In this document: positions 6,340 through 56,770 of the stretch, piece by piece
Layout of the letters: every line of letters starts with the position of its first letter
How positions within the stretch are numbered: the stretch's first letter is position 1
Assembly (NCBI RefSeq): GCF_030028105.1
Contig: NC_092384.1
Location: 3,267,665 to 3,331,664 of the forward strand
Direction of reading: 5' to 3'
DNA: 64,000 nt
From: Mobula birostris
Lineage: Eukaryota
Program-made: the position numbers and the translations under genes
Notes under the pieces: generated by a model
The model's database searches: none
Seen by the model: only the letters and a program-made list of their open reading frames with translations
Told to the model about the DNA's origin: nothing

Positions 6340-8800
6340 TTAAACAGTTTACTGAATGGGTGACATCGAGGATTGAAGAAGGTAGGGTGAAAAACAGGTG
6401 GTAAACATAGCTTTAGCAAAGCCTTTGACAGAAGGTTAGATCATTTGGAGTCCAGGGTGTGGTAGAAAATTGGGTGCAGAAGTGTCTGGTGGTATGACTG
6501 AATGACTGGCAGATGCTGTCATAAGGCGGTGGCTGGGAACAGACCCAAGTGCAAAACACAGACACTGAAGTACTAAGGACAGGACTAGGATACAGGGTGA
6601 GGGCAAGGACATGACAGGAAAACTGGGAACCTGGCACAGGACTGGACAAGAGAGCTAGGAGCACGGGTTTGGACTCTGAGCCAGAGACTGGACAGGGACC
6701 CAGTACCTTTGTGTTGCCTCTGGCTCGGTCTCCAGAGCTAGGCAAGGACGAGACTTGGCTGGCAGACAGGACGAGGCTGGAGTCTTAGAGACTTGAGGCG
6801 AGTCTTGGCAGGAGGCAGAAGAGTTGAGGCGAGGCTTGGTAGGAAGCAGGAGACTGGAGTGTTCAGGCTTGAGGCTAGAGACTTGAGGCGAGGCTTGGCA
6901 GGAGGCAGAATGCTGGAGTCTTCAGGCTTCAGACTAGGCAGGAGGCTGGAGTCTTCAGGCTTGAGGTTGGAGCCCAGAGGTGAGGCTTCGCAGGAGGCAG
7001 GAGGCTAGAGGCTTGGCTGGAGGCCGCAGGATAGAGGCTCCTCCTGGGCAGGACGTGGTACTCTTGGGCAGGGCGCAGTACTCCTGGGCAGGGCGCCGAT
7101 CACCACCCGACAGAGGAAAGGGACAGGAAGGGACTGAACCAACCGCAGGTAACGGCAAGACGGCCTGGCTTACCACACGGAGGCAGGGGTTTGGAAGGGA
7201 CAGAACCAACCGTAGGTAACGACAATACGGCCTGGCTTACCCAACAGAGGCAACAGACAGGAAGGGACAGAACCAACCAAAGGTAACAACAATACGGCCT
7301 GGCTTACCCATCGGAGGCAAGGGGCAGGGAGGGACAGAACCAACCGTAGGTAACGGCAAAACGGCCTGGCTTACCCGAAGGAAGAAAGGGACAGGAAGGG
7401 ACATAGCCAACCACAGGTGACGGCAAGACGACCTTGCTTAACTGGACGGAGGCAAGGGACAAGAATTGTGCTAGGTACAGGGTGGCTCCAGGACAAGACT
7501 GCAGGCGAGACAAGGCAAGGCTTCAGGCAATGCAAGGCGAGACGAGAACTTCAGGTGAGGCGAGAGTTACCGGCAAGACAAGGCAGGGATTCAGGTGAGG
7601 AAACAGAAGGCAGAGGAAGGGATACAAGCAGTAAGGACAAGAACAATCCAGCAGCCACTCCCTGGTCTCTGGAGGTATTTATGCAGCCAGTCCCAAAAAG
7701 CATCAGCTGCCTCAATTAGCGCTCAACAAGAACAGAAACATGGTAGATAGGAAAACCTGGAGCAAGGGTCGAATGACCTGACTGTGAACCGGAATATGGA
7801 CTTCACGGACCGGACCATGACAGATGCAGGCTGTTTTTCAGATTGGAGGCCAACGACTAGTTGTGCGCCACGGGGAGTTGAGCTGTGTCCATATTTGTTC
7901 GTCATCAACCTTTACAATTTGGTTGAGAATGATGTTAACATCGTTAGTAATTTTGCGGATGACATCAAAATTGATTGCGTAGTGTACAACGAAGAACCAT
8001 ATTGAAGAATACAGCAGCATCTCGAACAAATAGGACTGTAGGCCAAACAAAATCTCAGATGGATCTAAACTCAGAGAGGTTCAAATTAAAAGTTTAACGC
8101 GGGCAGGACGCATGCAGTCATTGCAAGACTCCGGGGAGTGTTAAGAAGCAGAGAGGTATGAGAGTATAACGACATAGCACCTTGAAAATGGAGATACAGC
8201 TTAACAATGTGGCCAAAGAGCCGTTTGTCATGCTTATTTTCATCAGTCAAGACATTGAGTAAAAGAGCTGGGATGTTACGTTGCAACTATAATGGATGTT
8301 GGTAAAACTACGCTTGGAGAATTGCGTGCACTTATTGTCATCAAGTTATTGGAAGGACATCTTTAAGCTTAAGGGGATCCAGAAAAGATGCCCAAGAACG
8401 TTACCAAGGCTGGAGGGCTTAACGTATCAGGAAAGACTGGATAGTTTGAGATTTCCTTTCCAATGGTGCGTGCGGATCTGAGAAGACACAATATAGAGAT
8501 ATGTAAAATCACTAGGGTGATGATAGGTGAATGATCAATCTCTTTCTCAGGTTAGTGAAGTTTAAACTTAGAGCAAATTAGAGGAAGGCATAAAAAAGGT
8601 GACGTGTTGCATGATTTTCAATCAAATAGTGGCAACTATATGCAACGAAATACCAGAGGAAATGATAGAGCAATCGGAACATTTCTCTGGAATTTAGACA
8701 GCTTCGGGGTTTGGAAACGTTTAAAATAGTATGGGTAAATATATGAGAATTGTATTATCTCTGATTGGCCATTTGGAAGGCGTAGACGTTTGGGCCGAAG
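6340..8800 (+). mobile_element. Old degenerate CR1-like LINE RT fragment, split by a solo LTR
   Basis: GCFSDWRPTTS...VSNFADDIKI... resumes exactly after the LTR TSD; its 3' part is paralogous to 32075-32560. Confidence 0.7.
6517..7822 (-). mobile_element. Solo LTR (Gypsy-like) with internal GA-rich tandem repeats
   Basis: TGTCAT...ATGACA inverted ends; 5-bp TSD GATGC (6512-6516, 7823-7827); TATA-like gcataaata on the minus strand. Confidence 0.85.
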
Positions 8801-11800
8801 GAATTGTTCCTCTGTGTAACGCAGCCATTTTATGACTTTATTAGACACACCTTTGGTTCAAAGCACTGAAAACTAAATGAAACATCTATATTTTTTGCCG
8901 CATGTCTATGCTTCCACACCTGATTAACAACTGCATTTCCGGAAAGGATTTGGGCATGCTAAGCTGAATTGTACCATGCATGTAAGTAATGCAGAGATCT
9001 TACCCAGCTCCCTCTGACGAGCCTGCTTTTTTCCACAGAGCAAATTCAGTGTTTTATGTATATCTTTATGCTCATCACAATGTCGCATTTCTTGGTGAAC
9101 AGAACGATCATACTTCAAATACAGCAACACAGTTCACCTATAAAATTTACATTGTAATTCGCTGCATAAGAATTATAATTACCAACCACTTACAGTATTT
9201 CCATTACGTATTAATTTACCCAATGCTCCATGATAAAAAAAGGCGACAATCTACTTTTCACTCGTAAACGGCTATTCAGGAATAAGAGATAAGCAACACA
9301 TTTCATAGTAGCAGTAATCACATCAGAGTTAAGGGAAATGTCTGTCATTCGGGCATGGCTGGGAACGGACCCAACTGCAAGACACAGGCATTGAAGTACT
9401 AGGGACAGGACTAGGATACAGGGCGAAGGCAAAGACATGGACATGAAAACCAGGAACCTGGAACAGGACTGATCAGGAGAGCCTGGCGCCCGGGCTTGGA
9501 CTCCGTGCCAGAGACTGGACAAGGACCCAGTACCTGGGTCTTGCCTATGGCTCGGACCCCAGAATTAGGCAAGGACGAGGCTTGGCAGGCAGGCAGGACG
9601 AGGCTGGAGTCTTTAGGCTAGAAGCTAAAGGCTAGAGACTTGACTTGGCTTGGCAAGTGGCTAGAGGCTAGAAGCTGGAGTCTACAGGCTCGAGGCTAGG
9701 CCAGAGACGTGCGGGGCTTGGCAGGAGGCTGGAGACTTGAGACTAGAGGCGAGGCTGGAGGCTGAAGACTTGAGACTAGAGGCGAGGCTAGTGGCTGGAA
9801 ACTTGAGAGTAGAGGCGAGGCTGGAGGCTGGAGACTTGAGAGTAGAGGCGAGGCTGGAGGCTGGAGACTTGAGGCGAGGCGAGGCTGCAGGTTGGAGAAT
9901 TGAGGTGAGGCGAGGCTGGAGGCAGGGCGCGGATCACCTGGGCAGGGCGCGGTACTCCTGGGCATGTCGCGGATCACCACCCGACAGAGGCATGGGACAG
10001 GAAGGGACAGAACCAACCCCAGGTTACGGTAAGACGGCCTGGCTTACCTGGGTGGAGGCAAGGGACAGGAAAGGAGTTAGAAGCAGGGTGGCTTCAGGAT
10101 CAGACAGCAAGATGAGGCAAGGCTACTGGCAAAGCAAGGCAAGACGAGAACTTCAGGAGAGGCGAGAGTTACTGGCAAGACAAGGCAGGGCTTCAGGCGA
10201 GGAAACAGAAGGCAGAGAAAGAAGAAGAAGGAGTAAGAACAAGAACAATCCAGCAACCACGCCCTGGTCTCTGGTGGTATTGATGCAGCCAGTCCCAACG
10301 AGCATCAGCTGCCTCAATTAGCTCAAAAAGTACAGAAACAGGGTAGATAGGAAAACCTGGAGCAAGGGTCGTGGGACCGGACCGTGAACCGGAATATGGA
10401 CTTCACGGACCGGACTATGACAATGTCAGATATTCGCTGTTGCCGCTAGAAATTAAGTAACCAATTTGCAGATACAATTCATTCAATCTTATCTCTGCTT
10501 GTCCTCACTTTTTCTCCTTTAACCTGATCGTATTTCTATTCCAGGCACCTACAAGCATACCGATTACATTTCACACATTCAAATCCAGGTAAGGAATTTG
10601 CGAAGTTACTTTCATCTATACATTTGTGTTGTACAAGTGTATTAATGTCACAGGAAACGGGTACGCGATAAGTAGTAAACTAAATTGAGGGTTAAAATCT
10701 TCGAAAACATTTCATTCAGACAAACGGGAATTGCTTCGAAGCGGCGGGAGTGCCTCGCAGTTAACGTAACTGTATGTGGAATGAGTCAGCAAAAATAGAA
10801 TGGTGCGATATATCATCGGTGTTGAAGACATCCCGAATCAAATTATATTAGACATATTACTAATGCAGTTTGTGAGTCTCTGCAAGGAGAAGGGCGCTAC
10901 TATCCGGGAAGGAATGTGGTGTTCCGTCCTTCACTGACCAGATCGAGTACGTGTCAAATTTATTAATAAAATAAATCTTTATGACATCGAAAGGTTTTAT
11001 GACTGTAAACACCTGCTTTTATTGCTAAATGTCTAACTCTAAGAGTTTAAAAACGAACTCTTACAGTTTATTACCACTGTATAAAATGAGTTCTTCGAAA
11101 CTAATTTATAGAACTGACAGGTCTCTTACACTTTTTTTCAATTTTCTATATTTAAATTTACCAGGTGACTCAGAGCATCTAGCATCTGGATTTCAGTGCT
11201 CAAACTGAGAGCTTCACAATGTGAGCATGAATATTTTAACGCTCAGATATGGAATCAGTTATCGAAGGAGCTAATTGTGACAGATAACCTTTCTTAAACA
11301 ACATTTTCTCCAGCCTGAAGGAGGTATGTTTCTTATCTTTGATCCTTCACCTGACTCCTCTCTTATTCTTAATTCAGGCTCGTCCTCTTTGCGGGAGATG
11401 TATTCATGTCCTTCTTTATATTCTTCGACTTACGTTTATCTTGTCGTGTTTCATCATATTCTTTCAACCTGCTTTGGCTTTACACCATATCATTAGTCTC
11501 CTCTACTCAATTTCTCTCAGTTGCTCTTTCGATGAACACCAGATATGTGCGTATATTTTCCATTGCAATTCAGATATAAGTTCAGGAAAAAAAATGATAG
11601 GCTCCCTTTATTTCTTCCTGCACAGACCAACACTCGCTTGCACATTATTCTTTACGTTTACCATATTGAGCAGAATTATACACTGGGAAAGCGGGAAACT
11701 GTAAACCTCCCTGTTTCATGCTGTCTAACGCTAATTTGTGTTTAATTATGTACGACAGAGAACAGATCACAGTTACACAAAGCTGAGGTTGCCATACTGA

Positions 11801-12530
11801 TTTTCTTTCACAGTTTATCCGTATTATATATTTGCTTTTATTCTTAATCATGTTCGTCTATAATATGTTCCTACATCACAATGTTTGACGTGTTGCAACA
11901 TGGCAAGAAATCACAATGTATATTGATTTTATTAGAACAGACTCAGGCAAGTACGTTGTTTTGCAGAATTACAGAATGGAAATATGAAGGGAACTTGAGA
12001 TACTGCAAGTCTGCCCCATCAGCGAGCTGTTCGTTCGCCAAGGAGCTGAAGGAGCTGGATTTCGTGCAGACCGCATTGCTGCTTGCTATAGGAAGGCACT
12101 GGGGTCACTGTGTGAAGGCAACGCGCACTCTAACTACGAGTAATTGTGTTGAATGCTTCTCCTCCGATCATAAGACCCTGTTTGACAATAATAATATAAA
12201 ATGCTGCGAAGTCCGCTTCCCTGTTTATTGGATTGACAGAAGCCGGAAGAGTTGAATGGCCTCGGTTATAGCGAGGACAAGGCCTCAAACCACGGCTTGT
12301 CTATTGCAGCAGTCCAGGACACAGATGGCGGAAGCGGTGTAGCGCAGCCTCCATGCTGGGTCGGGGGCTGCTCCTCCCGTTTATGCTCCCCTGCAGTTGA
12401 ATGACAAGGTCGGTTGTGTGCGTACATGCTTGTGCGTGTACGTTTGTCTGTTGAGAAATGCTTGTTCTTGCCGACAGCACACATGCATGATCAGTTTACA
12501 GGGCATGTTACTCAGAGACTTAGGCTATGT
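8319..12530. repeat. Segmental duplication block X, copy 1 (paralogous to ~32075-34820)
   Basis: Colinear match, e.g. 14 differences in ~285 nt over the 12.0 kb / 34.1 kb segment. Confidence 0.9.
9343..10422 (-). mobile_element. Solo LTR, same family as 6517-7822
   Basis: TGTCAT...ATGACA ends; TSD ATGTC (9338-9342, 10423-10427); empty paralogous site at ~33100. Confidence 0.9.
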
Positions 12531-13981
12531 TGATTTAAAATGAATGAGAGTACTGTAAATAAATGATACTTTGAATTGGATTTTGTATTAAAAGATTATG
12601 ATTATTTCTTTCATATGATGTGATGATTGACGCCAGACATGTTGTTGTCTAAGGAAGAGCGTTAGGCGTAATAAGCTGTAGCTTCAGCGTACACCCTTTC
12701 GGTCTGTTTTAAAGAATATCTGTTTGTCGTTGTTGTTTTGTCTTATGCAATCATTGTTATGCAATCATCGTTTTTGTTATGTTTGTACTGACCGAAATAA
12801 ATTTCATTCATTCATTCATGTATTTTTTCGAATATTGGGAGATTCTCCTGGAGTCTGTGCTTGTCAATCATGACGTGCTTATCAAATATTAAATCACAGT
12901 TTATTTAGAAATATACCCACGTGTCTATTCCAATGAGAATACACCAGATGCTTAACAGATTTGCAAACCGATTCAACCATTTTCTTTCAATAATTGATAA
13001 ATATCCCAAACTTCCCCCGATTTTGATTACAAATTACAGGTTCTGCTAATTCATTTGTAAAAGTATAACAGAAACACACGGAAATATGGAAACCGCGGGA
13101 AACCCGCCATTCCCTGTGTAAAACTGTACAAAAGATTCAAACTCCATAATACTTTCCCGCTTAGGTAAGAACTCCTCAATGATGTCCATTATAGAAATGT
13201 GGCCCACTTCTTTACCGAATTTCGTGACGCTGTGCGCCATGAGGAACCTGTTTCAACCGTGGGATGGCTCGGTTATTCAGACAAAGCAGTCCCTGTATTG
13301 ACGTTAGTTCTTATGTTAATTCAGGGCAGCAGATTTCAACGCGCTCTGATCCAATGCATTTAGAAGCTCGTTTGCTGTCTCGCGAGTCTGCGTAGGCGAA
13401 GATATTAAATTAGTCTACATTTAAAGTCTTCCTTCTGAAGAATAGCAGCGTGGTTTAAACACGACAGCAAGGAAAAAAAAACACAGTGAAATATCGACGC
13501 TGTTGGTTATACAGCTTAGTAAATGAGATAGCTATCATTGTCCATTACTTGACCTGTTAACGAAAACAGGCAATGCTGGTATGGAGAGATCAGGCAGGGT
13601 CTCTGGAATGAATGTTTTGGGATTAGATCAGACCCGTGTGTAACGGTTCCGTTGCTTATACTGTACGATTAAAGGTAAAATACAGTACAGGTACACTATA
13701 ACTGCTAACACCCTCAACTGTGCAGATTTACAGAGGGACCTTAAGGTCAAAGTTCATAGCTTCTTGATAGTGGCTGCACAAGTTGATAGGGTGGCATAGA
13801 AGAGAGAGAATGAACAATGCTGCGTTGATTTCTCTGGAACAGTGGAGTCAGAAACCTAATAGATGTTTATAAGTTTCTGAGAGTGGACAAGCAGCATCGA
13901 TTTTCTAGAGTTGCAACGTCCAAAACTAAAGGGTACGCAATTCAGGTAAGAAAGGTTAAGTTGAAAAACGATACGAGAAGC

Positions 13982-14143: not shown

Positions 14144-17100
14144 ACTTGAATTTCCAGCAACTGCAGATTTCCTCGTGTATTGAGAATGAAGTTCGTTTTC
14201 ACACAGATTACTGGGTGATTGGAATGCACTGCCGGAGGTGTTGATATTGATAGATACTTGAAGCTCTAAGATAAGCAAGTAAATATGCTGAGAACAGAGG
14301 AATAAGGACATTGCGTAGACAGAAAGGATCTCTTTAGTTAGATCTCTAACTACTCGTATTGTTAGTTTTGCACAATATTAGTGACGAAATAGCTTGTTCT
14401 CTGTTTTACTGTTCTATATTCCGTGTTTTATGATCTATTTTCTATGGAACCAAGTGACATAATCCAGAGAGATGATTCGGAATCAGAATGGAACGGGTTT
14501 CTGGAAAGACGGTGATTTTGTACAGACGCGAAATCACTGGAGCTGTAGAACAATCCGCCTGAAGAGACATTATGAAAACCAGGTGACCTAGCAATAAATG
14601 AAACAGTTTTGCCGAAGAAGTGCAACAGCCAACGAGCGATGGTTTCTATTGTACAATATATGATATAAGCTGCGGTCGGACACTTATGTAGAGGATAAAC
14701 AGGAAGGCTGATGTGATGAATTAAATGACATTGTTTGGTTTGGTTGAATTGAGTCCTATGTTCTGGGACAGTCTCCCAAGCTATTCCCAGTTGTGCCACA
14801 TCTTCGAAAGTCTTTCTCGCAGGAATGAGGATTCCGGAGCTTGTGTTGACGTTGGGGGTTTATGGGATGGTGTTGCAAGCCCCACGTCTACTCTTCCTCC
14901 TTTCACAGCCGGGTTTGGTACCGTCCATGGCCGAGCCATTCCTACGGAACCTCTGCACAATTGAACACCAACAAAATAACGTCTTGGGTGCACACTCAAA
15001 AGAGTATGGGCCGGGAACAGTAACGGGACAATAACGATACACGTTCTCATCATAAAAAAAAAGGTGGAGACGGACAGCACTCAAATGGGTGATCGATTGG
15101 AATATTGAGAATAATCTGCTCGACTATCCCCAACACACGTTAAGAAAAGGGTAAGCGTTTTCGGGAGAACGTGAGAGAATGTTACCGAAATGTTGGAAGT
15201 CACATTTGTTGATTGTCTGGATTAATTGTTATTCTTTGACCGGGGAAGGACTCGGCGTGATTTGACCAAGTGATTAGAAATCACGACTGAGCTATAGAAA
15301 ATGAATACGGACAGGTTAACTGCTCTCATGAGTGTTAAACCGAAGAACTACAATGACGTTGATCGGCAGAGGAACCGAAAAGATTCTAGTAAATAAACCG
15401 AAAGGAGTAGTGGAAACGGAATATTTTGAGGAAAGGACAAAGGGCAAAGTAACGGGACAGTCTAGATCGCTTTTCCACACAGGCTGCATGAATTCAATGG
15501 TCCGAATGCCCGCCCTCTTCGATTTCTGTCGTGTTTTGGTGAAATATCGATTAGAGTTGTTGAAATATATTTCCATTAAACAGGCCGAATAGTCTGGAAC
15601 GATGGAACGGAGTGCTGGACATGCTAATCGAGTCTCACTACAGTATTATTATATCACTGCTCTTTTGCATACAGAACTCTTTTATTCCTGCTGTTTAACT
15701 CCAGAGTCAATATGCAAATAGGGAAAGTTCGAATGTCCTGAAATTCGAAAGGTCGACCCAGAATAAACAGAAATAATCATCAAAGCGGACAATTTGGATT
15801 AATGTTGCGTGGTGCACAAACCATTGGAGACTTTGCTGTGCTTTGACTCCCACAAATTATAGCGTATTATTTTTATTTAATTATCTTCAAAATTGATCTA
15901 AGCAATAAAAAAAACACTGAACTATTACCTTTATTTAAAAAAAGCAATATTCCAAAAATCAGAAATACGAATCTAAACCAAACACATCGGGAAAACAGCA
16001 AGGTTCTGTCTCCATCGAGAATAAAGGATAAACTAAGGAAGTGAATGCCAAAATTACTGCCAATCGTAATAGCACTAAAATGTTCTCTTCTGAAAGCGGA
16101 GGGAATCAACCTTAATTACGAAAGAAGTTTTACAATTATAGAATTGCAACGTTTTCAAATGCAATTGCAATGTCTAAAGATATTGTGACAGACGCTTGGG
16201 TAGATAAAGTGGATTAGGTGCAGAGAGCTGTGAGACTAATGATGATAAATTGATTTTGATTAGTTAGACAGCACGGCCCAGTGTCTTGAAAGGACGCTGT
16301 ATGAGTCCATTATTTCTTTTTCTGCATTTAACTCTAATCAGCATCTTGTTCATAGCCTGAAGTTATTTGCATGTTTGAATCATGACCAGAGCAGATGAAC
16401 GCTCAGTGAGCAGAATTAAAGGAAACAAGAAACAGCAAACATATATACCTGGATTAAAATCTGCCGAGGTGCCAAGCTGAATAATTAGGAAATAAGTGTA
16501 AAGTACACCTCATTGGTTCGGTAATAACATGCACTGGAACGGCAGCATACTACCTCATATGGATTTGGAGAAATTTAATTTCGTGGAAAGATAAAAAAAG
16601 GATTGTAATCTTTCCTAACAGACGTTTAATACGATTGAATTGTTTTCCAGAACAAAGGAACTGGTCCAGAAAGAAGTTCAATGCATAAACGGAGTTCCAA
16701 ATGTTTCTGACAAGTACCACGTGGGAGATTGTTCATTGTTCCGTGGAGCAAAGATAATCAAATTACTACTGTGCTTACAAGCCACTGAACATTCCAATTG
16801 TTTCTGTGTTGGAGTTGCTGAGATTAATGAAGTTTCTCTAAAGAAGACAAGATAAACATAAGCTTCAAGTGCATAGAAATTCCAATTGGGAGCAATGTTC
16901 ATCTATTTTATAAATGAGATAGAATTTCACACGGGGAACAACGATCGAGGTTGGTAGACCAAAAATATAGGTAATTCTGCTTTGCAGCATAGTAGAAGAA
17001 ATGGAACAGTCTGGGAAAATGTGCGCATACGCGGCGGATAGAATGAATCCGTATGAATGTAGGGGAGATTGTACATAAAAACGATATCACCGGAAACCTG

Positions 17101-17194
17101 GAAAACCTGCTCTGACAGCTGTGCCTTCGACAAGGCATCAAGCATTGTTTGGACTAAACTGAAATGATGGCCGGTTTAATTGGCATATTGAAAC

Positions 17195-17310
17195 CTTGCA
17201 AATGCCAAGGAGCACGGAGTGAAGAAGTCTGATAGAGCAGCAGGATTAAACCATTCGGTTGCATCACCAATCAATACCACTTTTATATTCTGAACGATTT
17301 CCGACAGTTT
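17195..17310 (-). pseudogene. Candidate degenerate TM exon of gene A (frame-disrupted)
   Basis: Good acceptor tttatttttgtcag and weak donor AAG|gtttca; hydrophobic pieces VVLIG / GLILLL / SVLLGICK lie in different frames; two stops in the phase-1 frame. Confidence 0.3.
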
Positions 17311-18037
17311 CTGACAAAAATAAACATGACTCGAATATCCTCTGTCACTCGCCTGTCGGAGAGGCAGGGAATTCTGAAGGTTAATCGGAATGCCGATGAA
17401 GGAATTTCTGCTGAAAGGCAGTTGTCACCTTTCAGAACGCGACCGCTGGCTTCTGACATGTCAACCAGGGGAAGCTCCATGTCTATATTTGCTCAATAAT
17501 ACACTGTATATATTATATATCTTTCATTGAGGTACATAGACGTACAGGCGCAGTGTGAGTACGCTATATATCTTTCTCCACCCCAACATTATCAGATAAA
17601 GTAACAGATATTTCAATTGCCATCTCGCTGGACGAGAGTTCAGAGGAGCTCCCTTATCAATGCTGCAGATGGTGGACGAGTAATTAAACGTGTAAGTTGA
17701 TTTTAACGGACAACGGAGCCAGAAAGGGTTTGGAAACAAATTATGCAGGATTCAAAATTGTAGTGAAAATGTAAAGAGAGAATGACTGGGAATAAATCGC
17801 GTAAAACACGGTGCTTCGGCCGCCAGAGAGGCAGCAGCTGCCAAAGTAGCGCTCAAAGGCCAAATTTATACAATTTTGTCAAATGTTTTGGAGAAACAGG
17901 AAGTGCCTGTGATGTATAGCGGAATCATCAGAGCTAGGTCTTTCAAATGTAATCAAATGACCTTTCCTACAAAGTGATATCCCGAAATCCCGCACCGACA
18001 CACCTATTTCTCTGATAACTGAGATTGGCGGATTTAC

Positions 18038-18340
18038 CATTGTCGATGTTGATGACAGTGTAAGTGGCTAGAGCAGAAACCTGGAGAGTGAGGTGAGATA
18101 CCAGACAGGTGTAGACTGTCCCGGTTGGCACAACCTGAGTCGCTGACAATCTGCTGGAAGCTTCATATAGCCCATCCGAAGTGGAGTTGGTAACAGTCGA
18201 ACCGGTTGTAATTTTGGTGCCATCTTTATACCAAGTGAGGCTGATACCCATTGGGTAAAAGGGGAATTTAGTGCACATAAGAGCCAATGATACCAATTTC
18301 TCTGGATCTCCAGAGTAAAATTTCAATGGAGCTGGAGGAA
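18038..18340 (-). CDS. Ig C1-set domain exon (C1b), gene A
   Basis: ttcttag|TT CCT CCA...AAT G|gtaaat; 303 nt, phase 1-1, open; [27 protein letters not shown]...YTCLVSH. Confidence 0.9.
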
Positions 18341-18751
18341 CTAAGAAATGGGGGAATATACGAATGTCTGGTTGTTTACGGTTAGCTACATATTTTAGGC
18401 CATATCAGCGTTCGATTTTATTAACATAAAAGCCAGAAGTTTAAAGATTACAACTGCAGGAATTTAAGTTGGATTGGAGAAATATAGTGCTGGATAACTA
18501 ACGGAGAAAATCGTGATCATATGGGATCCGACGCGGCTGTACTCAAAGGGCTCCAGAATTAAACGTTGAAATGAATAATTATGTACAAATATATTAGCCA
18601 AATTTTAATTAATGTCGTTGAATACTCTTGTTTTATATAGTCAACACGGGCAGCTACAATTAATACTGCTATTCTATTTAAGAAGCATTAAACAAAAGGC
18701 AGTTTCGCAGTCGCAAGTTCGCATCAACTGATTCGTTTTTAAAGCTCCTAC

Positions 18752-18835
18752 CTACACAACAAAAGTCGACCCTGTTCCGTTTCCAGCCAGTGTGCCCTGA
18801 TGGGCGATGGTTCAATAATAGACTCCCGCATCTTG
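18752..18835 (-). pseudogene. 3' remnant of a second VJ-type V exon
   Basis: QDAGVYY*TIAHQGTLAGNGTGSTFVV*; the second Cys codon is TGA (18812-18814); 5' part absent, joined at caag. Confidence 0.9.
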
Positions 18836-19294
18836 GCAATTAAAGACCATCAATTTCCTCCAGACATTAAACACCACCAGATTTTGCTTTCTTTCTCGTC
18901 TTGTGGCGCCTTTAGCATCTGTCTGTTCTCAACCTAACACGGATGGAAAGCACGGGGTTCCGGCTGGATTCCAGCTTGGGATCATCGCCTCGAGGTCCGG
19001 AGCTGATGCCACCATATCACCAGCCGGCAACACCAGTGTGTCTTAGATTTAATATATTATACAAATCGGAGAAATCATGAGAATAATTTTCTTTAGACAC
19101 GAAACGCATTGCATTTCATGCTGGAGAAAACAGCTTCCGTACAAATTGTAAAGAGCTTATTTTGTACGTAGTTAATAAGAACCTATGAGCGGTCACAGGG
19201 AAGTCCAGCGAAAACGATTAAATGCGGAGATCATTTAAATCTGGTTTATAGTTACCCGACTTTTTTTTATGATAGTTGAAATCCATAGTCTCAC

Positions 19295-19597
19295 CTGTGC
19301 TGTAGTTGATGATGATGTAAGTGGCTAGAGCAGGATCCCGGAGGGTGACGTGAGGTACCAGACAAGTGTAGACTGTCCCGGTTGGCACAACCTCTGTCAC
19401 TGACAATCTGCTGGAAGCTTCATATAGCCCATCCGAAGTGGAGTTGGTAACCGTCGAACCGGTTGCAATTTTAGTGTCATCTTTATACCAGGTGAAACTG
19501 ATATTGGTTGGGTAAAAGGGCGATGTAGTGCACAGTAGAGCCAAGGCTTCCGATTTCTCTGGATCTCCGGAGTAAATTTTCAATTGAGCTGGAGGAA
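19295..19597 (-). CDS. Ig C1-set domain exon (C1a), gene A
   Basis: ttcttag|TT CCT CCA GCT CAA...ACA G|gtgaga; 303 nt, phase 1-1, open; [14 protein letters not shown]...YTCLVPH. Confidence 0.92.
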
Positions 19598-20024: not shown

Positions 20025-20345
20025 CCAACACAACTAAAGTCGACCCGGTTCCGGTGCCAATCAATGTGCCCTGATGGGCGATTGTACAATAATAGACTCC
20101 CGCATCTTGTGGACGCACGTTCACTATCTGCAGAAAGCCGCTGAATTTAGTATTGAAGCCGTTCGATGCTCTGGCGTCTTGTTTTGGGTTGATGTAATTA
20201 TTTTTACCCTTTTTCCACCAATATATTTCAACGCGGGAATCCTCTGGCAAAGAGGAAGGGGAACAATCAAAAGAGACATTTTCACCTTTGCTGATTTTGG
20301 CGATTTTAGGGAGTTGTGTAACTTTGGCAGAAGATTTAACTGACC
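20025..20345 (-). CDS. Germline-joined VJ-type Ig V domain exon, gene A
   Basis: tttaatttag|GG TCA...TTG G|gtaggt; 321 nt, open; SVKSSAKVTQLPKIAKISKGENVSFDC...IYWWKK...LQIVNVRPQDAGVYYC...GTGTGSTLVVL, with canonical Cys-Trp-Cys and a J-like GxG motif. Confidence 0.93.
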
Positions 20346-20481
20346 CTAAATTAAAGGAATATCATTTCCGAATCAGTAAGAATCATTACAAAGAGTGTAT
20401 ACAACTGTAAAGACGAACAAGGGCAAACATAAAGCGATATTCAATAACTGTTCCATTCTGAAGAATGGGAAAGCTATTTAC

Positions 20482-20536
20482 CCGTAAAATATATCATCCA
20501 AAGAAGCAGACAGTAAGGTCCCACGCTGGCCAACAT
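20482..20536 (-). CDS. Signal-peptide (leader) exon, gene A
   Basis: ATG...MLASVGPYCLLLWMIYFT G|gtaaat; 55 nt, phase 1, in frame with the V exon after a 136-nt intron. Confidence 0.85.
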
Positions 20537-20604
20537 TCTGGTACAAGTGATCACAGGGATGGCGCAGTCGCGAACTGTTTCTCTGGGTTGAGCTGCCACA
20601 GGGT

Positions 20605-20675: not shown

Positions 20676-20870
20676 TGCTTATGCGAACCGCAGCGCCATC
20701 GTCTTCGAAACCGATTATGTTTTTAGATTGTATTGTTAATAACCTACGGTGTGCAATTTCATTGGATGAACTAAATCCCTGCGGCCCGAAATCTCACTGC
20801 ACTATCTCCTCACTCATTCCCACGTGTCCACTCTCGTTGTCACACCACTTCCCAGCCCCATCACGAACTC

Positions 20871-23669
20871 CATAGAAACCATAGAAACCATAGAAACTGC
20901 AGCACAGAAACAGGCCTTTTGGCCCTTCTTGTCTGTGCCGAACCATTTTCTGCCTAGTCCCACTGACCTGCACATGGACCATATCCCTCCACACACGTCC
21001 TATCCATGTATCTGTCCAATTTATTCTTAAATGTTAAAAAAGAACCCGCATTTATCACCTCGTCTGGCAGCTCATTCCATACTCTCACCACTCTCTGTGT
21101 GAAGAAGCCCCCTCTAATGTTCCTTTTAAACTTCTCCCCCCCCCACCCTTAACCCATGTCTGCTGCTTTATTTTCTCCCCTTGCCTCAGTGGAAAAAGCC
21201 TGCTTGCATTCACTCTACCTATACCCATCATAATTTTATATACCTCTATCAAATCTCCCCTCATTCTTCTACGCTCCAGGGAATAAAGTCCTAACCTATT
21301 CAACCTTTCTCTGTAACTGAGTTCCTCAAATCACGGCAACATCCTTGTAAACCTACTCTGCACTCTTTCAACCTTATTTATGTCCTTCCTGTAAATTGGT
21401 GACCAAAACTGAACACGATACTCCAGATTCGGCCTCACCAATGCCTTAAACAACATCATCGTAACATTCCAGCTCTTATATTCAATACTTTGATTAATAA
21501 AGGCCAATGTACCAAAAGCTCTCTTTACGACCCTATCTGACTGTGACGCCACTTTTACGGAATTTTGTATCTGTATTCCCAGATCCCTCTGTTGTACTGC
21601 TCTCCTCAGTGCCTTATCATTAACCCTGTATGTTCTACGTTGGTTTGTCCTTCCAACATGCAATACCTCACACTTGTCAGTATTAAACTAATCTGCCATT
21701 TTTTAGCCCATTTTTCCAGCTGGTCGAAGTCCTTCTGTAGGCTCTGAAAACCTTCCTCACTGTCTACTACACCTCCAATCTTTGTATCATCAGCAAACTT
21801 GCTGATCCAATTTACCACATTATCATCCAGATCATTGATATAGATGACAAATAACACTGGACCAAGCACTGATCCCTGTGGCACACCACTAGTCACAGGC
21901 CTCCACTCAGAGAAGCAATTCTCCACCACCACTCTCTGGTTTCTTCCATCAAGCCAATGTCTAATCCAATTTACCACCTCTCCATGTATACCTAGCGACT
22001 GACCGCCTATGCGGGACTTTGTCAAAGGCCTTACTGAAGTCCATGTAGACAATATCCACTGCCTTCCCTTCATCCACTTTTCTGGTAACCTCCTCGAAAA
22101 ACTCCAATAGATTGGTCAAACATGACATACTACGCACAAGGCCATGTTGACTCTCCCTAATAAGTCCCAGTCTATCCAAATGATTGTAGTTTCTGTCTCT
22201 CAGTACTCCCTCCAATAACTTACCTACTACCGACGTTAAAGTTCCTGGCCTATAATTTCTCGGATTACTTTTCGATCCTTGTTTAAACAACGGAACAACA
22301 TGAGCCACTCTCCAATCTTTCGGCACCTCACCTGCAGACAGCGACATTTTAAATATATCAGCCAGGGCCCCTGCAATTTCAGCACTAGTCTCCTTCAAGG
22401 TCCGAGGGAACAACCTGTCAGGTCCCGGGGATTTATCCACTTTAATTTTCCTCAAGACAGCAAGGACCTCCTCATTTTCGATCTGTACAGTTTCCATGAT
22501 CTCACTGCTTGTTTCCCTTAATTCCATGGACTTCATGACTGCTTCCTTAGTAAACACAGACGTAAAAAAAACTATTTAAGATCTCCCCCATTTCCTTTGT
22601 TTCTGCACATAGCCGACCACTCTGATCTTCAAGAGGACCAATTTTATCCCTTACAATCCTTTTGCTCTTAATATACCTGTAAAAGCTCTTTGGATTATCC
22701 TTCACTTTGACTGCCAAGGCAACCTCATGTCTTCTTTTAGCCCTCCTGATTTCTTTCTTAAGTATTTTCTTGCACTTCTTATACTCCTCAAGCACCTTAT
22801 TTACTCCCTGCTTCCTATACACGTCATACAACTCCCTCTTCTTCTTTATCAGAGTTGCAATATCCTTTGAGAACCAAGGTTCCTTATTCCTATTCACCTT
22901 GCCTTTAATCCTGACAGGAACATACAAACTCTGCACTCTCAAAATTTCTGCTTTGAAGCTTCCCACCTACCGATAACATCCATGCCAGAGAACAACCTGT
23001 CCCAATCCACGCTTTTTAGATCCTTTCTCATTTCTTCAAATTTGACCTTCTTCCAGTTAAGAACCTCAACCCTAGGACCAGATCCATCCTTGTCCATGAT
23101 CAAGTTGAAACTACTGGTGTTATGATCACTGGAACCAAAGTGCTCCCCTACACAGACTTCTGTCACTTGTCCAAACTCGTTTCCTAACAGGAGATCCAAT
23201 ATTGCATCCCCTCTAGTTGGTTCCTCTATATATTGATTTAGAAAACTTTCCTGAACACATTTTACAAACTCTAAACCATGTAGACCCCTAACAGTATGGG
23301 AGACCAAATCAATATATGGAAAATTAAAATCCCCTACCACCACAACTTTATGTTTCCTGCAGTTGCCTGCTATCTCTCTGAAAATTTGCACTTTCAATTC
23401 TCTTTGACTATTGAGTGGTCTGTAATACAATCCCACTAATGTGGCCATACCGTTCCTCAGCTCCACCCACAAGGACTCAGTAGACAAGCCTTCTAATTTG
23501 TTCTGCCTGAGCACTACTGTAATATTTTCCCTAACAAGCAATGCCACTCCCCCACCTTTCATTCCTCTGCCTCCAACACATCTGAAACATCGGAACCCTG
23601 GAATATTAAGCTACCAGTCCTGCCCCTCCTGTAGCCAAGTTTCACTAATTGCTACAACGTCGTAATTCT
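20871..23669 (-). mobile_element. 5'-truncated CR1 LINE (endonuclease + RT, frameshifted)
   Basis: (catagaaac)3 tail at 20871-20897; overlapping ORFs 22939..23562 (EN: GDFNFP) to 21085..21303 (RT: KSPGPD, YMDFSKAFD, FADDTK); absent from the paralogous site ~57025. Confidence 0.95.
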
Positions 23670-25516
23670 TTTAACATCTACTAAACCTACCCTTCTCCAC
23701 TCACTATTTCCTCGCGAACCTTCCACCCTTGCCACCCTTGCATCCAACAACAAAACAAACTATGGCGAAGGCACCAAAACTCTAATAGCTTTTGACAACT
23801 TCTATGCGCTTTGTACATAATCCTCCTGATTTTTCCGATAAAATGGCAAAATTTCTCGGAGGTAAAATAAGTTGTTGATTTCACAGTGTCCTCGGTTTGT
23901 GCTAAGCCTCTTTGTCGGAGGATTGCGTTATTTCATGTGAAAATTCTGCCAATGATGCGAAACCATTTTAGATGTTACTGTTGAGAGACATTAAGCTAGA
24001 GTACGGCAGAGAAACAGCAGAATCATCACCATCTTCCTTAAATGAGTGAGTTACGCGCAATTCACCAAGAGTTTGTCTGGAAACTGATTTGAGTTTAACA
24101 GGGAACAGGTAGAAATCATTTTACGACCAGTGTTATGTTTATTTTGTGTAATTTCTCCTAAACCACTAACCTTTTAATGATAATCAGAGACTATGATTAA
24201 TTATTCCTCCTTTTTTTCTGCTTTTCTGCTTTCCTCAACGCTGAAAATCTTCCCGCATTCCGCACACCTTATCAAATTACTTGGTAATATTCAGTGATAC
24301 AAACCGATCGGCTTTGATGAGGCAGGGTGGAACAGAGAACTTGATTTGTTGTCTGGATGGTTGTACTTTCGCATGCTTTGGGGTGATTTAATAATAATTT
24401 GGAACACACATATTGCAGGTTTTGTTTTAAACGGAGGCAGTGTTCAATTTAAGAGAGAAACACACACACACATACACACACACACACAAACACGTTTGCT
24501 AAATTCCGCAAATGGAGGATGTCAGATGCTCAGTCAGAGGTTAATGTAGTAAAGGGTCGAGGACGTAAGTGGAAGGAAATTCCATCCTGTACCGATTGAA
24601 GAACTTAAACGTCAGAGTAAGTCTCACCGAATCCTATTCCATGGCGTTCTGTCTCCTGAGTCTGTTGGTCTCGGCATGTTGGTGAAGTGGGACACAACTT
24701 TCAGTGCTTGAACGGTTGATCAATTTCTTCTGCAGAAATAATATTTGTTTCAGTTCGCATGGAATACTGGGAAACATCTATCGCATGGAAACATAGCTAA
24801 TTATATTGGTGATTGGCTCAATGGTTGAACGCAGAGCGTGACGGTTGAAGGTGGTCTCGGACCGGTGGCTTATGACTAGAGGCGTTACCAGAAGGGTCGG
24901 TGCAGCATCTTTTGCTGTTCATTGTTTATATAAACTATTTGCATGTGAACGCATGAGGAGTGGCGATAAGGTTTCAAATCATATTAAAATAGCTGGTATC
25001 GTAAAGTACGAAGAAGGTAATGGACAACTGTAGGAAAATTTCAGTCAGTTAGGTCAGTGGGCCCAATATTAGCAAATGCTTTTAGTTTCCGTATGGTTAA
25101 TCTGCATGTTGCTTGCATGAACTGCGATTTCGTCAACATCCAGGACTTTTTCTCTTTGCACTTTCTCTTCTTCATTTCCCGATCTTGGGGTGGGGGAATT
25201 TTGAACAAAAAATAAATATTAACATTTCAATTCCACGCCTATGTGTTGTTTTCTAACTGACTGCTTCTGAGTGCTTCGGTAAAAATAAACACAATTCATT
25301 ACCAGAAGTTGAAATTTAGTGTCCTCGTCTGAGTCAAAACGGGTTTTTATCTGGCTATGGCGAAAATCTGAATTTCATTCATTCTGCAATAAACTACATT
25401 AAACTGAATGCAATAGTCTGGAATTATTTCGGACTTATATTAAGGCATCAGAAAACACACGGGTCAATAACTTTTGTTTGATTGGCTTTGAATGAAGCAG
25501 TAAGAAACCATAATTT

Positions 25517-26480
25517 TAGAAACATAGAAACATAGAAAACAGGTGCAGGAGTAGGCCATTCGGCCCCTCGAGTCTGCATCTCCATTCAGTATTATCTTGG
25601 CTGATCATCCAACTCAGAACCCTGTACCAGCATTCTCTCGATACCTCCTGACCCATTTAGCCACAAGGGCCATATCTAACTCCTTCTTAAATATAGCCAA
25701 CAAACTGGTCTCAACTGTTTCCTGTGGCAGAGAATTCCACAGATTCACCACTCTCTGTGTGAAGAAGTTTTTCCTCATCTCGGTGCTAAAAGGGTTCCCC
25801 CTTATCCTTAATCTGTGACCGTTCGTTCTGGACTTCCCCATCATCGGGAACAATCTACCTGCATCTAGCCTGTCCAATAACTTTCGAATTTTATACGTTT
25901 CAAACAGATCCCGCCCCCCAATCTTCTAAATTCCAGCGAGAATAAGCCTAGTCGATCCAGTCTTTCCTCATATGAAAGTCCTGCTATCCCAGGAATCAAT
26001 CTGGTGAACCTCCTTTGTACTCCCTGTATGGCAAGACTGTCTTTCCTCAGATTAGGGGACCAAAACTGCACACAATACTCCACGTGTGGTCTCACCAAGG
26101 CCTTGTACAACTGTAGTAGTATCTCCCTGCTCCTGTACTCGAATCCTCTTGCTGTGAATGACAGTATAACATTCGCCTTTTACACTGCCTGCTGTACCTG
26201 CATATCCACTTTCAATGACTGGTGTATAATGACAGCCAAGGTTTCGTTGCACCTCCTCTTTTCCTAATCGGCCACCATTCAGATAATAATTTGTTTTCCT
26301 GTTTTTTGCCACCAAAGTGGATAACCTCACATTTATCCACATTAAATTACATCTGCCATGAAATTGCCCACTCACATAACCTATCCAAGTCACCCTGCAT
26401 CCTCTAAGCATCCTCCTCACAGCTAACACTGCTGCCCAGCTTCGTGTCATCCGCAAACTTGGAGATGCTGCATTTAATTC
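25517..26480 (-). mobile_element. CR1 3' fragment (shared with 58706-59610)
   Basis: tagaaacatagaaacatagaaaa tail; ORFs 25614..26507 are RT C-terminal; same insertion point in the paralogue. Confidence 0.9.
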
Positions 26481-27795
26481 CCTGCCTGTAAGTATGATTG
26501 GGAACATCCAGCCTTAACTTCACAATGTTTGCTGAAGGGCAGTTTCCTACAGCTCAGTTGCTGGAGAGCTCACAGTCAAAAACGGTTTTACAACCATCAG
26601 TTCCAAACCTGGCTCAATTAACTTATGTGTTTATCACTTATTATGTTTATCTCATAACCGATGCTCGACTGCGGCAGGATTCAACATTGAGTATACAGCA
26701 TGCGTCAGAGAAAAAATGATACTTCTCAGACAGTTAATTGCCATATCACAATGCTCAATCACGATATATTCCTATGATTGAGCATTTAATAGAAGAAAAG
26801 ACATTCGCAAGTGTACCACAACTGAGTGGTTACCAGAACATTCGCCAAAATCCTAGGTAATTCATCTAGTTCCGTGATCATGGTATAGCGATTTCTCCGT
26901 CGATTTTAATAACTTTACATATATCCACTGTAAATTTCTTTGTGAAAGTAATCGAGCTGACTCATGCAGGGAGGTATCTATCTCCTGTAGGTTTCACGTT
27001 CTTAGATATATCGGAATTTGCCATTGTGAATCAGAAGAGAGAGGGTATATCTAAAATCAGTGCCCAGTACGCTCCCCAGCTGTTGCCAGAAATCCAGATT
27101 GATGTTCAAGGGATACCAGTGAAGCAATGTTAGTGTTAGGTGTACCTCTGACCGAAAGAAAGAGTTGAGGTGGATTATTGAAACATGCCAGCTGTGAGGC
27201 CAGCGTAACCTTGCACGATATTTATCAAGCTTGAGCGCGTGTATTCACAAAACGTATAAGCAGTTTTTCGTTCGAACCTACGTTGGAGACCCGTAGTCCA
27301 AAAATAAAGCGTCGAATGAATTGTTGTTCCCAAGGACTTCATACGGCTGCATCCACTGACATACGTAGGCCTGATCTGGAATAAATTTGTGGAGTACTCG
27401 ATCTGTGTGTGTAAGAGCGGGAGAGAGAGGGAGAAGTGGCGGTGGGGTTTGGCAGAGAGATAGCGAGAGAAGGTATTAACGTTTCAAATGTGCAGGAAGT
27501 ATGCTGACGCTGAAACGTTAATAATAAAATGAAAAAAAAACTTAGCATGCAAACGCATTCAAGAGCCATGGTAATTTCTGTTAACATCCATCATTCTCGT
27601 TTAGAGGGCATTCTACCACATCGCATATGTGTCTGTGAGTGTGAGAGAGAAACTGAATTAAATATATCGTGCAGACAGAACAAAATATACTGCCTGAGAA
27701 GTCTATTCTTGAGGTTACTGTTCTTATTCCCCACAAATTAAGAACAATGTTAAATGCTTGGCCAAATGTAAACCAGGGAAAATTACTCAATTCTA

Positions 27796-27797
<2 letters not shown>

Positions 27798-27826
<29 letters not shown>

Positions 27827-27840
27827 GTGGGGGGGGGGGG
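27798..27840. repeat. (GT)n microsatellite followed by a G-run
   Basis: Direct reading. Confidence 0.95.
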
Positions 27841-28149
27841 TTGTCGGTGGTGGGTGTAGGGATGAGGATCCAGGGGTTTTGCTACATCTTGCACTAGGAA
27901 TTGAGGTATGAAAAGGGAGGAAGTCTTGAAGAGAGAATTTTGGGAGTTCGGTAGAGCGCTGAAAAGGAGTACCTCCAGGGTAGTAATCTCTGGATTGCTG
28001 CCTGTACCACGCTCCAGTAAGTGTAAGAAATGGCAGATTAATTCGTGGCTGGGGAGCTGGTGCCAAGGGCAGGATTAAAGATTATTGGATGCTCGGGATG
28101 TCTTTTGGGGTAGGTTTGACCTGTATATACCTCGCGGGCAGGTTTGTAA

Positions 28150-30600
28150 GAAATGTTGGATAGGGTATAATCTGATGCGGCAGTGGGGATGGGAAACAGT
28201 GATAGAGCAGTTACAGCAAGGCGGGGTGTAGTGAGGTTGTCAGGAGGGACAGGGATATGTGAGGGTAAAGTTGCAGGAGGTAAAATAAGTTGCAGTGCAA
28301 CAGGGGGACAAAATACAAAAAGCTGATGGATCCAGAACTGATGCTGTTGTACTTGAATACACACAGTATACACAATAAAATAGATAATCATGTCGGACAG
28401 TTACAGATTGGGGTGTATGTCGTTGTTGGATCGCTGAGTCATGACTGAGAGAGGATTATAGATGGAAGCTTAGCATCCAAAGAACACATTGTATCAAAAG
28501 GACAGGAAGGTAGGCAAAGGATTTAGCTTAATTCCGTTGGTAAAAAAAAATAAAACAAATTCTTTGAAAGAGGTGACATAAGGTTGGCAGATGTAGAATT
28601 ATTGCGGTTAGAGTTAAGGAACTGCGAGGATAAAATGATACAAATTGGTGCTATATACAGGACTTCGAACAGTAGCAATGAAGTGGCGTCTAAATTATAC
28701 CGGGGGCGGGGGAGAATAGAAAAATGCACCTCGAAAGGATAAGTCACCGGGTATAGAAATATACAGGTAGATTGGGAAAATTGGGTAGATCGGGCTGCCA
28801 AGAGAGAGAAATTGTGAAATGCCCTTGAGAGGGCGTGTTAGAGCAGTTTACAGTGGAGTCCCCTGACGGATTACCTATGCTGGATTAGGTGTTGAGTATT
28901 AAACTGGGTATGATTCGGGAACTTGAGGTAAAGGCACCCTCTATAGGCAGCAATTTTAATATGATTAAAATCCATCCATCAATTTGAGAGGGAGAAGTTA
29001 GAGTCAGTATTACAGCACAGTAAAGGGACCTGGAGAGCAATGATAGAGGAGTTGGTCGAAGTTGACTGGAAGGAGACACGAGCAGGATGACACAGACAGG
29101 AATGGTTGAGTTTCTGGGAGTAATTCGGGCGGCGCGGGTATATTCTAAGGAAGAAGTTATGTTCTAAAGGGAGGGTGACATAACCGTCCCTGAAAAGGGA
29201 AGCCAGTTCCAGCATGACAGCTGAAGAGAGGAAGTATAATACAACACATAAGTAGGAAGTTGGAGGATCGGAACCTGTTAAAAAACCAACAGAAGGCAAC
29301 GGAAAAGTCATAAGGAGCAGAAAGATTAAATATTGAGGTATTCTAGCTAATAACGTCAAATAAGATGCCATAAATCTTTTTTTCCAGCATTATAAACAGT
29401 AAAGGAGAGGGGAGAATAGAGATCAGACAGCTGAATAAATGACGCTGGACGGGTAGTAATGGGGAGAAGGACATGAGGAAGAACTGAGTAAGTATTTTGC
29501 ACCAATACTCACTCTGCAGGACACTAGCATCATTGCGGATATTTGAGAGTATTTGGGGGTACGTGGCGGAACATAATTAAGAAAAGATCCAGAGGCAGCA
29601 TGGTTTCGATAATGGAAAATCTTGCTTGCAAAATCTGTTGGAATTCTTGCGGGAATAAGAAGCAGGATGGACTAAGAAGAATCAGTGGATATTGTGTACT
29701 TGGATTTCCAAAAAGCCTTCATCAAGGTATCCTGTATGAGGTTGCTTAGCAAGTTAAGTAGCTTTACTATTGCACCATAGGTACTAGCATGGATAGAGCA
29801 TTGGCTAATTGTTTGTTTTCGATTGGCTGCTGGTGACTACTGGTGTTCCGCAGGTTTCTGTAGCTGCTGTTTATTTTTACGTTTGATGTCAATGATTTGG
29901 ATGCCGGAGTTCATGGCTTTCTGGCCAATTTTGTGGTTGATACGAGGATAGGTCGAGGGGCTGGAAGTGTTGCGGAAGTAGAGAAGGTGCAGAAGGACTT
30001 AGATAGATCAGGAGAATAAGCAAAGAGGTGGCAGATGCAATACAGTGTCGGGAAGAGTGCGGTCATACACATTGACAGAAGGAACAAAAGCGTAGACATT
30101 TTTCTAGATCAGAAGAAAATTCAAAACTCTTAACTGCAAAGGGACTTGAACGTGTCCGAGCAGGATTTGCTAAAGATTAAATTGCAGTTTGAGTAGTTCG
30201 TATTAGCATTCATTTCAAGAGCACTACGATACAAAAACAAGTATTTAATGCCGAGTCGAGATAAGGAATTGGTGAGGCCTCACGCGAAAGCATGTGAGTA
30301 GTTTTGGGCGCTCTATCTGAGAAAGGATGAGCTGCCATTGACTAGAGTCAGCGGGCACAACCTTAGAATAAAGGGTCATTCGTTTGAAAGGGAGATGAAG
30401 AAAAAATTGCTCAGATAGTTAGTGGTAAATCTGTGAATTCCGCTGCCACATGTGGCTTGGAGGCCAGTTGTCCGAGCATATTTAAAGCCGGGGTTGATAA
30501 ATTCTTGATCAAGCAGGGCGTGAACGGATACAGGAAAAAAGACAGAGGAATGGGATTGAGAGCAAAATGGATCAGCCATGCTAAAAGGTCGAAGACACGA
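28150..30600 (+). mobile_element. Old, highly degenerate CR1 LINE (EN/RT remnants)
   Basis: Remnants such as ttgtacttgaat..., ttggatttccaaaaagcc, ggccaattttgtggttgatacgaggataggt; many stops. Confidence 0.7.
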
Positions 30601-37973: not shown

Positions 37974-37975
37974 TT

Positions 37976-56467: not shown

Positions 56468-56770
56468 CTGTGCTGTAGTTGATGACGATGTAAGTGGCTA
56501 GAGCAGAAACCCGGAGGCTGACGTGAGATACCAGACAAGTGTAGACTGTCCCGGTTGGCACAACCTGTGTCACTGACAATCTGCTGGAAGCTTCATATAG
56601 CCCATCCGAAGTGGAGGTGATAACAGTCGAACTGGTTGTAATGTTGGTGCCATCTTTATACCAGGTGAAACTGAAATCCATTGGGTAATAGGGAGATGTA
56701 GTGCACAGAACAGCCAAGGCTTCCGATTTCTCTGGATCTCCGGAGTAAATTTTCAATGGAGCTGGAGGAA
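56468..56770 (-). CDS. Ig C1-set domain exon (C1c), gene B
   Basis: ttcttag|TT CCT...ACA G|gtgaga; 303 nt, open; 23 nt differences from C1a; flanks paralogous to C1a. Confidence 0.9.

Follow-up and report, generated by a model that had tools for sequence, protein, structure and literature searches.

The 64,000-nt stretch of the Mobula birostris genome analyzed here (the window) carries on its minus strand, from ~20.5 to 14.9 kb, a gene of the V(J)-C1 receptor family, gene A, that is a hybrid of two paralogs, G1 and G2, probably produced by one deletion between head-to-tail neighbors. Judged by the comparisons described below, the inhibitory-type G1 contributed the front of the gene, and G2, a paralog of a different, tail-less type, its back. 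The rearrangement scar, an intron that switches into the middle of a second V exon, is real and well preserved.

Exons and Conceptual Product of Gene A

The family comprises V(J)-C1 receptors of sharks, rays, and chimaeras, which appear among RefSeq predictions under mixed names (SIRP-alpha-like, Ig lambda-1 light chain-like, tapasin-related-like). Gene A belongs to it by its split leader, germline-joined V(J) exon, and phase-1 C1-set exon directly after V, and its nearest protein matches are from rays. The window contains one complete V exon, one V fragment, and three C1 exons of this type, C1a and C1b in gene A and C1c in a paralog at 56 kb (gene B). The parts of gene A are listed below in the order of transcription.

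20482..20536, minus strand: leader exon with ATG, 18 codons plus 1 nt, donor G/gtaaat (boundaries checked)
20025..20345, minus strand: intact germline-joined V(J) exon, 321 nt, phase 1-1 (Pfam V-set, 8.5e-9)
19295..19597, minus strand: C1a exon, 303 nt, phase 1-1, donor CAG/gtgaga (Pfam C1-set, 3.9e-12)
18836..19294, minus strand: truncated post-C1a intron, equivalent to the first 459 nt of the ITIM-type post-C1 intron (85.7% identity to 56009-56467)
18832..18835, minus strand: junction, with the 4-nt microhomology CAAG common to the intron and the V exon (three-way alignment, BLAST overlap)
18752..18835, minus strand: 3'-end remnant of a second V exon, 27 codons, QDAGVYY* (85% to the V exon by tblastn; alignment to 20025-20109)
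18341..18751, minus strand: V-C1 intron of the second gene, G2, now the 3' part of the C1a-C1b intron (colinear with 19598-20024)
18038..18340, minus strand: C1b exon, 303 nt, phase 1-1, donor G/gtaaat (Pfam C1-set, 1.1e-10)
16010..18037, minus strand: post-C1b intron, ~2 kb, unrelated to the post-C1a and post-C1c introns and colinear with contigs of organisms C and D
15929..16009, minus strand: transmembrane exon TM', 81 nt, phase 1-1, encoding DRTLLFSRCVWFRFVFLIFGILLFLNK with an Arg in the membrane span (tblastn to residues 213-249 of the stingray protein P0003; splice check)
14863..14958, minus strand: last exon (tblastn with P0003), canonical start at 14952, stop at 14942-14944 after E-V-P

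All these exons are open and in phase 1, and the conceptual L-V-C1a-C1b-TM' product has 357 aa. The leader has 17 of 19 residues in common with that of the Mobula hypostoma protein P0151, and the V exon ends in YYC...GTGTGSTLVV, with the J-like motif G-x-G-T-G-S present. Pfam C1-set PF07654 is matched by C1a, C1b, and C1c at 1e-10 to 4e-12. The C1b exon retains the canonical Cys and Trp and the C-x-V-x-H motif, and its acceptor, tttcttag/TTCC, is identical to that of C1a. Since the C1a donor and the C1b acceptor are both good and both in phase 1, a transcript would read L-V-C1a-C1b-TM'. On paper, the predicted product has one C1 domain above the family norm, provided that C1a is spliced to C1b.

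The Arg-bearing span of TM' has the sequence LLFSRCVWFRFVFLIFGILLFL. Behind TM' follow just N-K-E-V-P and a stop, that is, a tail of ~5 aa without Tyr motifs. The acceptor of the last exon at 14953/14952, used after the phase-1 end of TM', gives E-V-P-stop. Another frame of the same exon is 69% identical to the tail of the stingray protein (RFRRNGSAMDGTKPGCERRKS...) and is unreachable by canonical splicing, which only shortens an already signal-less tail. Within this putative last exon, positions 14895-14935 hold a core of ~36-41 nt that recurs in a great number of contigs, in each of the four runs, and is flanked there by unrelated sequence (its summed depth is 229 to 1066, vs 12.6 in the small run X8); it is the core of a high-copy interspersed repeat.

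The Junction and the Half-V Scar

The junction was delimited by self-BLAST of the window, in which two strong matches abut with an overlap of exactly 4 nt. One aligns 18048-18835 with 19305-20109 (84.0% over 806 columns) and spans a C1 exon, the V-C1 intron, and the 3' part of the V exon; the other aligns 18832-19684 with 56005-56857 (89.4% over 857) and spans the post-C1 intron, the C1 exon, and 86 nt of the upstream intron. Both have an E-value of 0 and thus are not due to chance. On the minus strand, the post-C1a intron 19294-18836 corresponds over its 459 nt to the post-C1c intron 56009-56467 of gene B, at 85.7% identity; the gene B intron extends ~1 kb further, to the transmembrane exon.

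A three-way alignment of the same strand places the switch to the nucleotide. The junction copy tracks the 56-kb intron to ...TTTAATTGCCAAG and then follows the V exon from CAAGATGCGGGAG. Past this point the 56-kb paralog reads on TAAATT, and the intact V exon has CCACAAG before the same point, so that the letters common to both, as deduced from present-day paralogs in place of the lost parental sequences, are the 4 nt CAAG. Microhomology of 4 nt is typical of end joining or template switching.

The V remnant is the last 84 nt of a V exon, with the acceptor and the 5' part gone. Its codon for the canonical Cys is changed from TGT to TGA, and 1 nt is deleted immediately ahead of the former donor. 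Use of the junction AG as an acceptor would cause the remnant to be read as D-A-G-V-Y-Y-stop. Behind the remnant, 18341-18751 matches 19598-20024 at 80-88% in each 60-nt block, except for one 16-nt gap.

A preliminary description of this DNA had claimed that the post-C1a intron matches the post-C1c intron and then switches at CAAG into the middle of a V exon. It had envisaged a dot-plot of the junction region against 54.5-57 kb as the relevant comparison. The self-BLAST, with its two matches abutting at CAAG, and the three-way alignment bear out this claim. Two further statements, that the half-V in the intron is inactivated and that L-V-C1a-C1b is in frame, also hold, the former by the missing acceptor, the TGA at the Cys codon, and the 1-nt deletion, the latter by the open exons, the 1-1 phases, the equal length of both C1 exons (303 nt), and the conceptual 357-aa coding sequence.

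Gene Types on the Two Sides of the Junction

The exons behind C1b (TM' and the last one) match by tblastn the Hemitrygon akajei protein XP_072926686 (P0003), a V-C1-TM protein with a short tail, which is the only one among 184 fetched proteins to contain the TM' motif. They are unlike the ITIM-type transmembrane segment and tail of gene B or of the M. hypostoma protein. In organism D, one contig of 3,538 nt aligns colinearly with 15313-18625, from TM' across the intron and C1b into the V-C1b intron; in organism C, a series of contigs that together span most of 15470-18822 keeps this order as well. Being colinear in organisms C and D, the arrangement TM'-intron-C1b-V-C1b-intron represents an established gene type rather than a local accident. 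The sequence comparisons thus far support the view that an inhibitory-type gene supplied the part before the junction and a different, tail-less paralog the part behind it. One aspect goes beyond the preliminary description: by its predicted exons, the fusion also replaces an inhibitory 3' end with a tail-less, Arg-bearing transmembrane end.

Identity to the M. hypostoma and H. akajei proteins is ~77-79% for V, 78-83% for C1a and C1c, and 68% for C1b. At the nucleotide level, C1a and C1c are 93.4% identical over 380 nt (97.7% in the 86 intron nt), compared to 86.8% for C1a and C1b and 88.4% for C1b and C1c. Neutral divergence is 10-13% between the flanks of genes A and B and ~16% between the G1 and G2 introns, values so close that the order of events is weakly resolved by them. 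The dN/dS ratios among the three C1 exons, 0.8-1.4, would fit decay as well as the fast evolution of immune genes.

Gene B and the Duplicated Flanks

The comparator of the preliminary description, gene B, lies in a unit that is paralogous to gene A and its surroundings. The relevant segments are the following.

56468..56770, minus strand: C1c exon of gene B, ITIM type (Pfam C1-set)
56005..56467, minus strand: part of the post-C1c intron homologous to 18832-19294; the intron runs on below 56005 to the transmembrane exon 54845-54946
20702..28387, minus strand: upstream region of gene A, duplicate of 56857-62149 (87-91%)
8318..12531, minus strand: flank downstream of gene A, duplicated at 32076-34825 (88-91%) and ending sharply at 12531/34825

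The duplication of genes A and B reaches 7.7 kb upstream of gene A. The stretch 12532-18835 of gene A (6.3 kb) has no counterpart in the gene B unit. At its 3' end, gene B has the ITIM-type transmembrane exon 54946-54845 and ITIM/ITSM exons at 47775-47135, with a duplicate at 40824-40178, and here it resembles the M. hypostoma protein. At its 5' end, it lacks 1,017 nt matching gene A 19685-20701 (promoter-proximal DNA, leader, and V), and both flanking matches meet at 56857. Gene B is itself a broken gene, a fact that the preliminary description had missed. A manta RefSeq model from another locus (P0013) likewise begins inside a C1 exon. No trace of a second C1 was found in gene B, which indicates that the extra C1 came into the gene A lineage from outside.

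The tail region of gene B has a history of its own. It is duplicated in tandem (38120-41686 vs 41689-48626, 84-88%), and the proximal copy of the ITSM exon, 40342-40178, contains an in-frame stop (VIYS*RNPK). The introns of the gene also hold inverted copies of ~3.4 kb (43057-46442 vs 53875-50434, 68% identity), with more fragments at 27.9-30.2 kb; this pair is probably an old transposable element.

Origin of Gene A

The course of events that we favor starts with a non-homologous break and join at CAAG that would have linked two paralogs of the V(J)-C1 family. The 5' piece would derive from the inhibitory-type G1 and comprise its promoter, leader, V, and C1a up to an intron position 459 nt past C1; the 3' piece would be G2 from the middle of its V exon on, with the V half, C1b, the Arg-bearing transmembrane exon, and the very short tail. 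A single deletion in a head-to-tail array could have removed the transmembrane and ITIM exons of G1, the spacer, and the promoter, leader, and 5' V half of G2, leaving the acceptor-less half V inside an intron. Splicing of C1a to C1b would then yield a protein with a tail-less anchor of the activating-receptor style, and its Arg-bearing transmembrane segment may pair with a signaling adaptor. Adaptor-coupled activating receptors (LILRA, OSCAR, and Fc-alpha-R type) characteristically have an Arg in the membrane span and lack a tail. The deletion between neighbors, the C1a-C1b splicing, and the pairing with an adaptor are our inferences. At the junction, an exon is cut on one side and an intron stops short of the transmembrane exon on the other, so that both sides are truncated, as a deletion between head-to-tail genes leaves them.

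The same junction could have been produced by replacement of the 3' part of gene A (the rest of the intron, the transmembrane exon, and the ITIM exons) with a 6.3-kb copy of G2 type, 12532-18835, from a donor that need not have been adjacent. Template switching could have brought this about, or an event resembling gene conversion but with non-homologous ends, and gene A would look no different. Paralogous flanks lie on both sides of the foreign 6.3 kb, as a replacement with two breakpoints would also give: they resemble the gene B unit at similar identity (88-91% for 8318-12531, and 87-91% for 18832-28387 vs 56005-62149), and both boundaries of the foreign piece are sharp. Replacement, however, needs two independent non-homologous junctions instead of one, its donor copy is not seen in the window, and a G2 unit in a tandem array is expected to have the same downstream flank, so that a deletion explains the flank homology too. 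We consider replacement unlikely, while giving it some weight, and prefer the deletion because one event suffices for it and because common flanks are to be expected among the units of a tandem array. It appears quite improbable that part of one gene, from mid-V to mid-intron, was duplicated internally in tandem, that the copies diverged, and that the 3' end changed later. A duplicated segment running from mid-V to 459 nt behind C1 would yield the same intron/mid-V junction, and 18048-18835 and 19305-20109 are indeed colinear copies, but the sequence behind C1b should then repeat the post-C1a intron, and it does not, even at low stringency. The post-C1b intron 16010-18037 gave no significant similarity to the post-C1a or post-C1c introns with 7-nt words or nhmmer, whereas the control, post-C1a vs post-C1c, gave 85.7% over 459 nt, and the homology stops already ~10 nt inside the C1b exon. 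Moreover, C1a resembles C1c, in another unit, more closely than it does C1b; the arrangement TM'-intron-C1b is found in other organisms; and a stingray protein of this type contains a single C1.

A chimeric join made by the assembly within a repetitive receptor array is the least credible explanation, with hardly any weight in our assessment. The locus does lie in a tandem array of units that are 84-93% similar, and the runs that contain most of the words across the junction come solely from the sample that probably gave the assembly. Against this, misjoins arise in register between near-identical repeats, and the present one links an intron to an exon out of register, through only 4 nt in common; the remnant bears mutations of its own; four runs of that sample contain 72-90% of the sampled 31-mers of 18500-19250; and contigs of organism B, though none crosses the junction, are at least 99% alike on both sides of it (18305-18518 and 18835-19232). 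The claim of the preliminary description that a deletion had fused two paralogs is therefore upheld in part: two different gene types are joined, an internal duplication is disfavored by the dissimilarity of the post-C1b intron that had been pointed out there, and replacement fits the junction as the deletion does.

The contigs of other organisms were searched for the unfused two-gene state; those of organisms B, C, and D cover both sides of the junction, and none crosses the junction, its equivalent, or an intact G2 V exon. They end in or beside the conserved QDAGVYYC stretch (18822, 18835, 20082, 20109), where the junction lies. An organism B contig that starts exactly at 18835 was considered as a sign of a branch point and rejected as an over-reading of a low-coverage run. 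Contigs of organisms B and D follow the V-C1b intron to 18625 and then fit the intact V region 19926-20109 better than the remnant, with ~27 nt missing; this pattern suggests that the V regions of those copies have been homogenized or that the manta remnant has undergone additional decay. Insertion of a 5' unit into a resident V exon was also rejected, since neither a 5' V half nor a second leader is found beyond 28387 or elsewhere in the window.

Expression

Run searches found no RNA run containing the stretch. Three runs were RNA-like, and in one of them, X2, none of the 16 contigs was at least 99% alike and none fell on C1b or TM'. The X2 contigs are 88-97% alike and fall on V and the 5' part of C1a. 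One of them is spliced from V to C1 (20025 to 19597); it shows 3 mismatches over 108 nt and so stems from a close paralog or an allele. Protein searches with P0003 and P0151 retrieved no product of gene A and no close V-C1 protein of the manta; the manta matches were only the 209-aa C1-TM-tail model P0013 and two distant proteins of V-C1 type. The gain of a C1 domain by gene A, as read from its exons, is plausible but unproven. That the gene is transcribed and C1a spliced to C1b, so that a tail-less, adaptor-coupled V-C1-C1 receptor with an Arg in the membrane span would have arisen from one out-of-register deletion, seems to us doubtful at present.

Relation to Known Receptor Families

Members of the V(J)-C1 family resemble gene A in the leader, germline-joined V(J), C1-set, and transmembrane exons, all in phase 1, but those found have one C1 domain, whereas gene A would have two, combining an ITIM-type front and a short-tail-type back. 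The sole V-C1-C1 relative found was a RefSeq model of the thorny skate, XP_032892405 (P0001), with V-C1-C1-TM-ITIM organization. It was rejected as an independent two-C1 gene, because the model merges two complete tandem genes. At this skate locus (L001), the genes occupy 14968-17415 and 37700-44069, ~22.7 kb apart, and are 93% identical in V and 97% in C1; the model runs from the C1 of the first gene directly into that of the second, leaving out the second leader and an intact V.

C1a finds its best counterpart among solved structures in the C3 domain of shark UrIg2 (9dmx_A, 9e-20); Ig mu and MHC class II beta come next. UrIg/UrIg2 was rejected as the family of gene A, being a different, non-rearranging gene with multiple C domains (PMC12227049). 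The designation SIRP-like in the preliminary description holds for the predicted domain count and fails in other respects. Mammalian SIRP alpha/beta/gamma have the same V-C1-C1 ectodomain count as predicted for gene A, and comprise both inhibitory and adaptor-coupled members. However, neither V nor C1a has SIRP among its best 60 PDB matches, and the transmembrane segment and tail of gene A are unlike those of SIRP: the former has an Arg and not the Lys by which SIRP-beta pairs with DAP12, and the ITIMs typical of the SIRP-alpha tail are lacking. The second C1 of gene A would also have arisen recently and independently.

Partial parallels to the scar and to the domain gain are known from mammals. 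KIR2D genes retain an Ig-domain exon as the unused pseudoexon 3; the manta remnant differs in being the 3' third of an exon that cannot be spliced as an Ig domain. Haptoglobin Hp2 acquired its duplicated domain through a non-homologous break and join within introns; this was an intragenic duplication between alleles and not a fusion of two gene types.

The closest mechanism, by analogy, appears to be that of the deletion-derived hybrids of the human KIR cluster, for instance KIR2DL1/2DS1 and KIR2DL3/2DP1 (Traherne et al. 2010, PMC2816608). There too, a deletion among head-to-tail genes of Ig-like paired receptors joins a promoter-bearing front to a back of the other signaling type, and the reading frame stays open; as for the KIR hybrids, both parental types of gene A are recognizable across one junction. 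The KIR join is homologous and in register and keeps the usual number of exons. The manta junction is not such an in-register homologous crossover (NAHR), linking an intron to mid-exon with 4 nt in common; it adds a C1 exon and leaves the scar of half an exon.

Biological Significance

The hybrid-gene event in the manta is real, and it is ordinary for fast-evolving receptor arrays. Its junction is unusually legible, for it shows directly where the break lies, which 4 nt of microhomology were shared, what is left of the split V exon, and which two gene types were the parents. It is thus an example of how illegitimate recombination in introns shuffles exons, here in the oldest lineage of jawed vertebrates with C1-set receptors. 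If the product is not made, gene A is one more relic in a cluster of fast turnover, where the neighboring gene B has lost its leader and V. If it is made, one event both added a domain and exchanged an inhibitory 3' end for one of activating style, and such a combination of domain gain and signaling swap is a way in which paired-receptor families are thought to diversify. A transcribed and spliced gene A would thus capture in the act the transition from V-C1 to a SIRP-style V-C1-C1 receptor, together with a switch from inhibitory to activating type.
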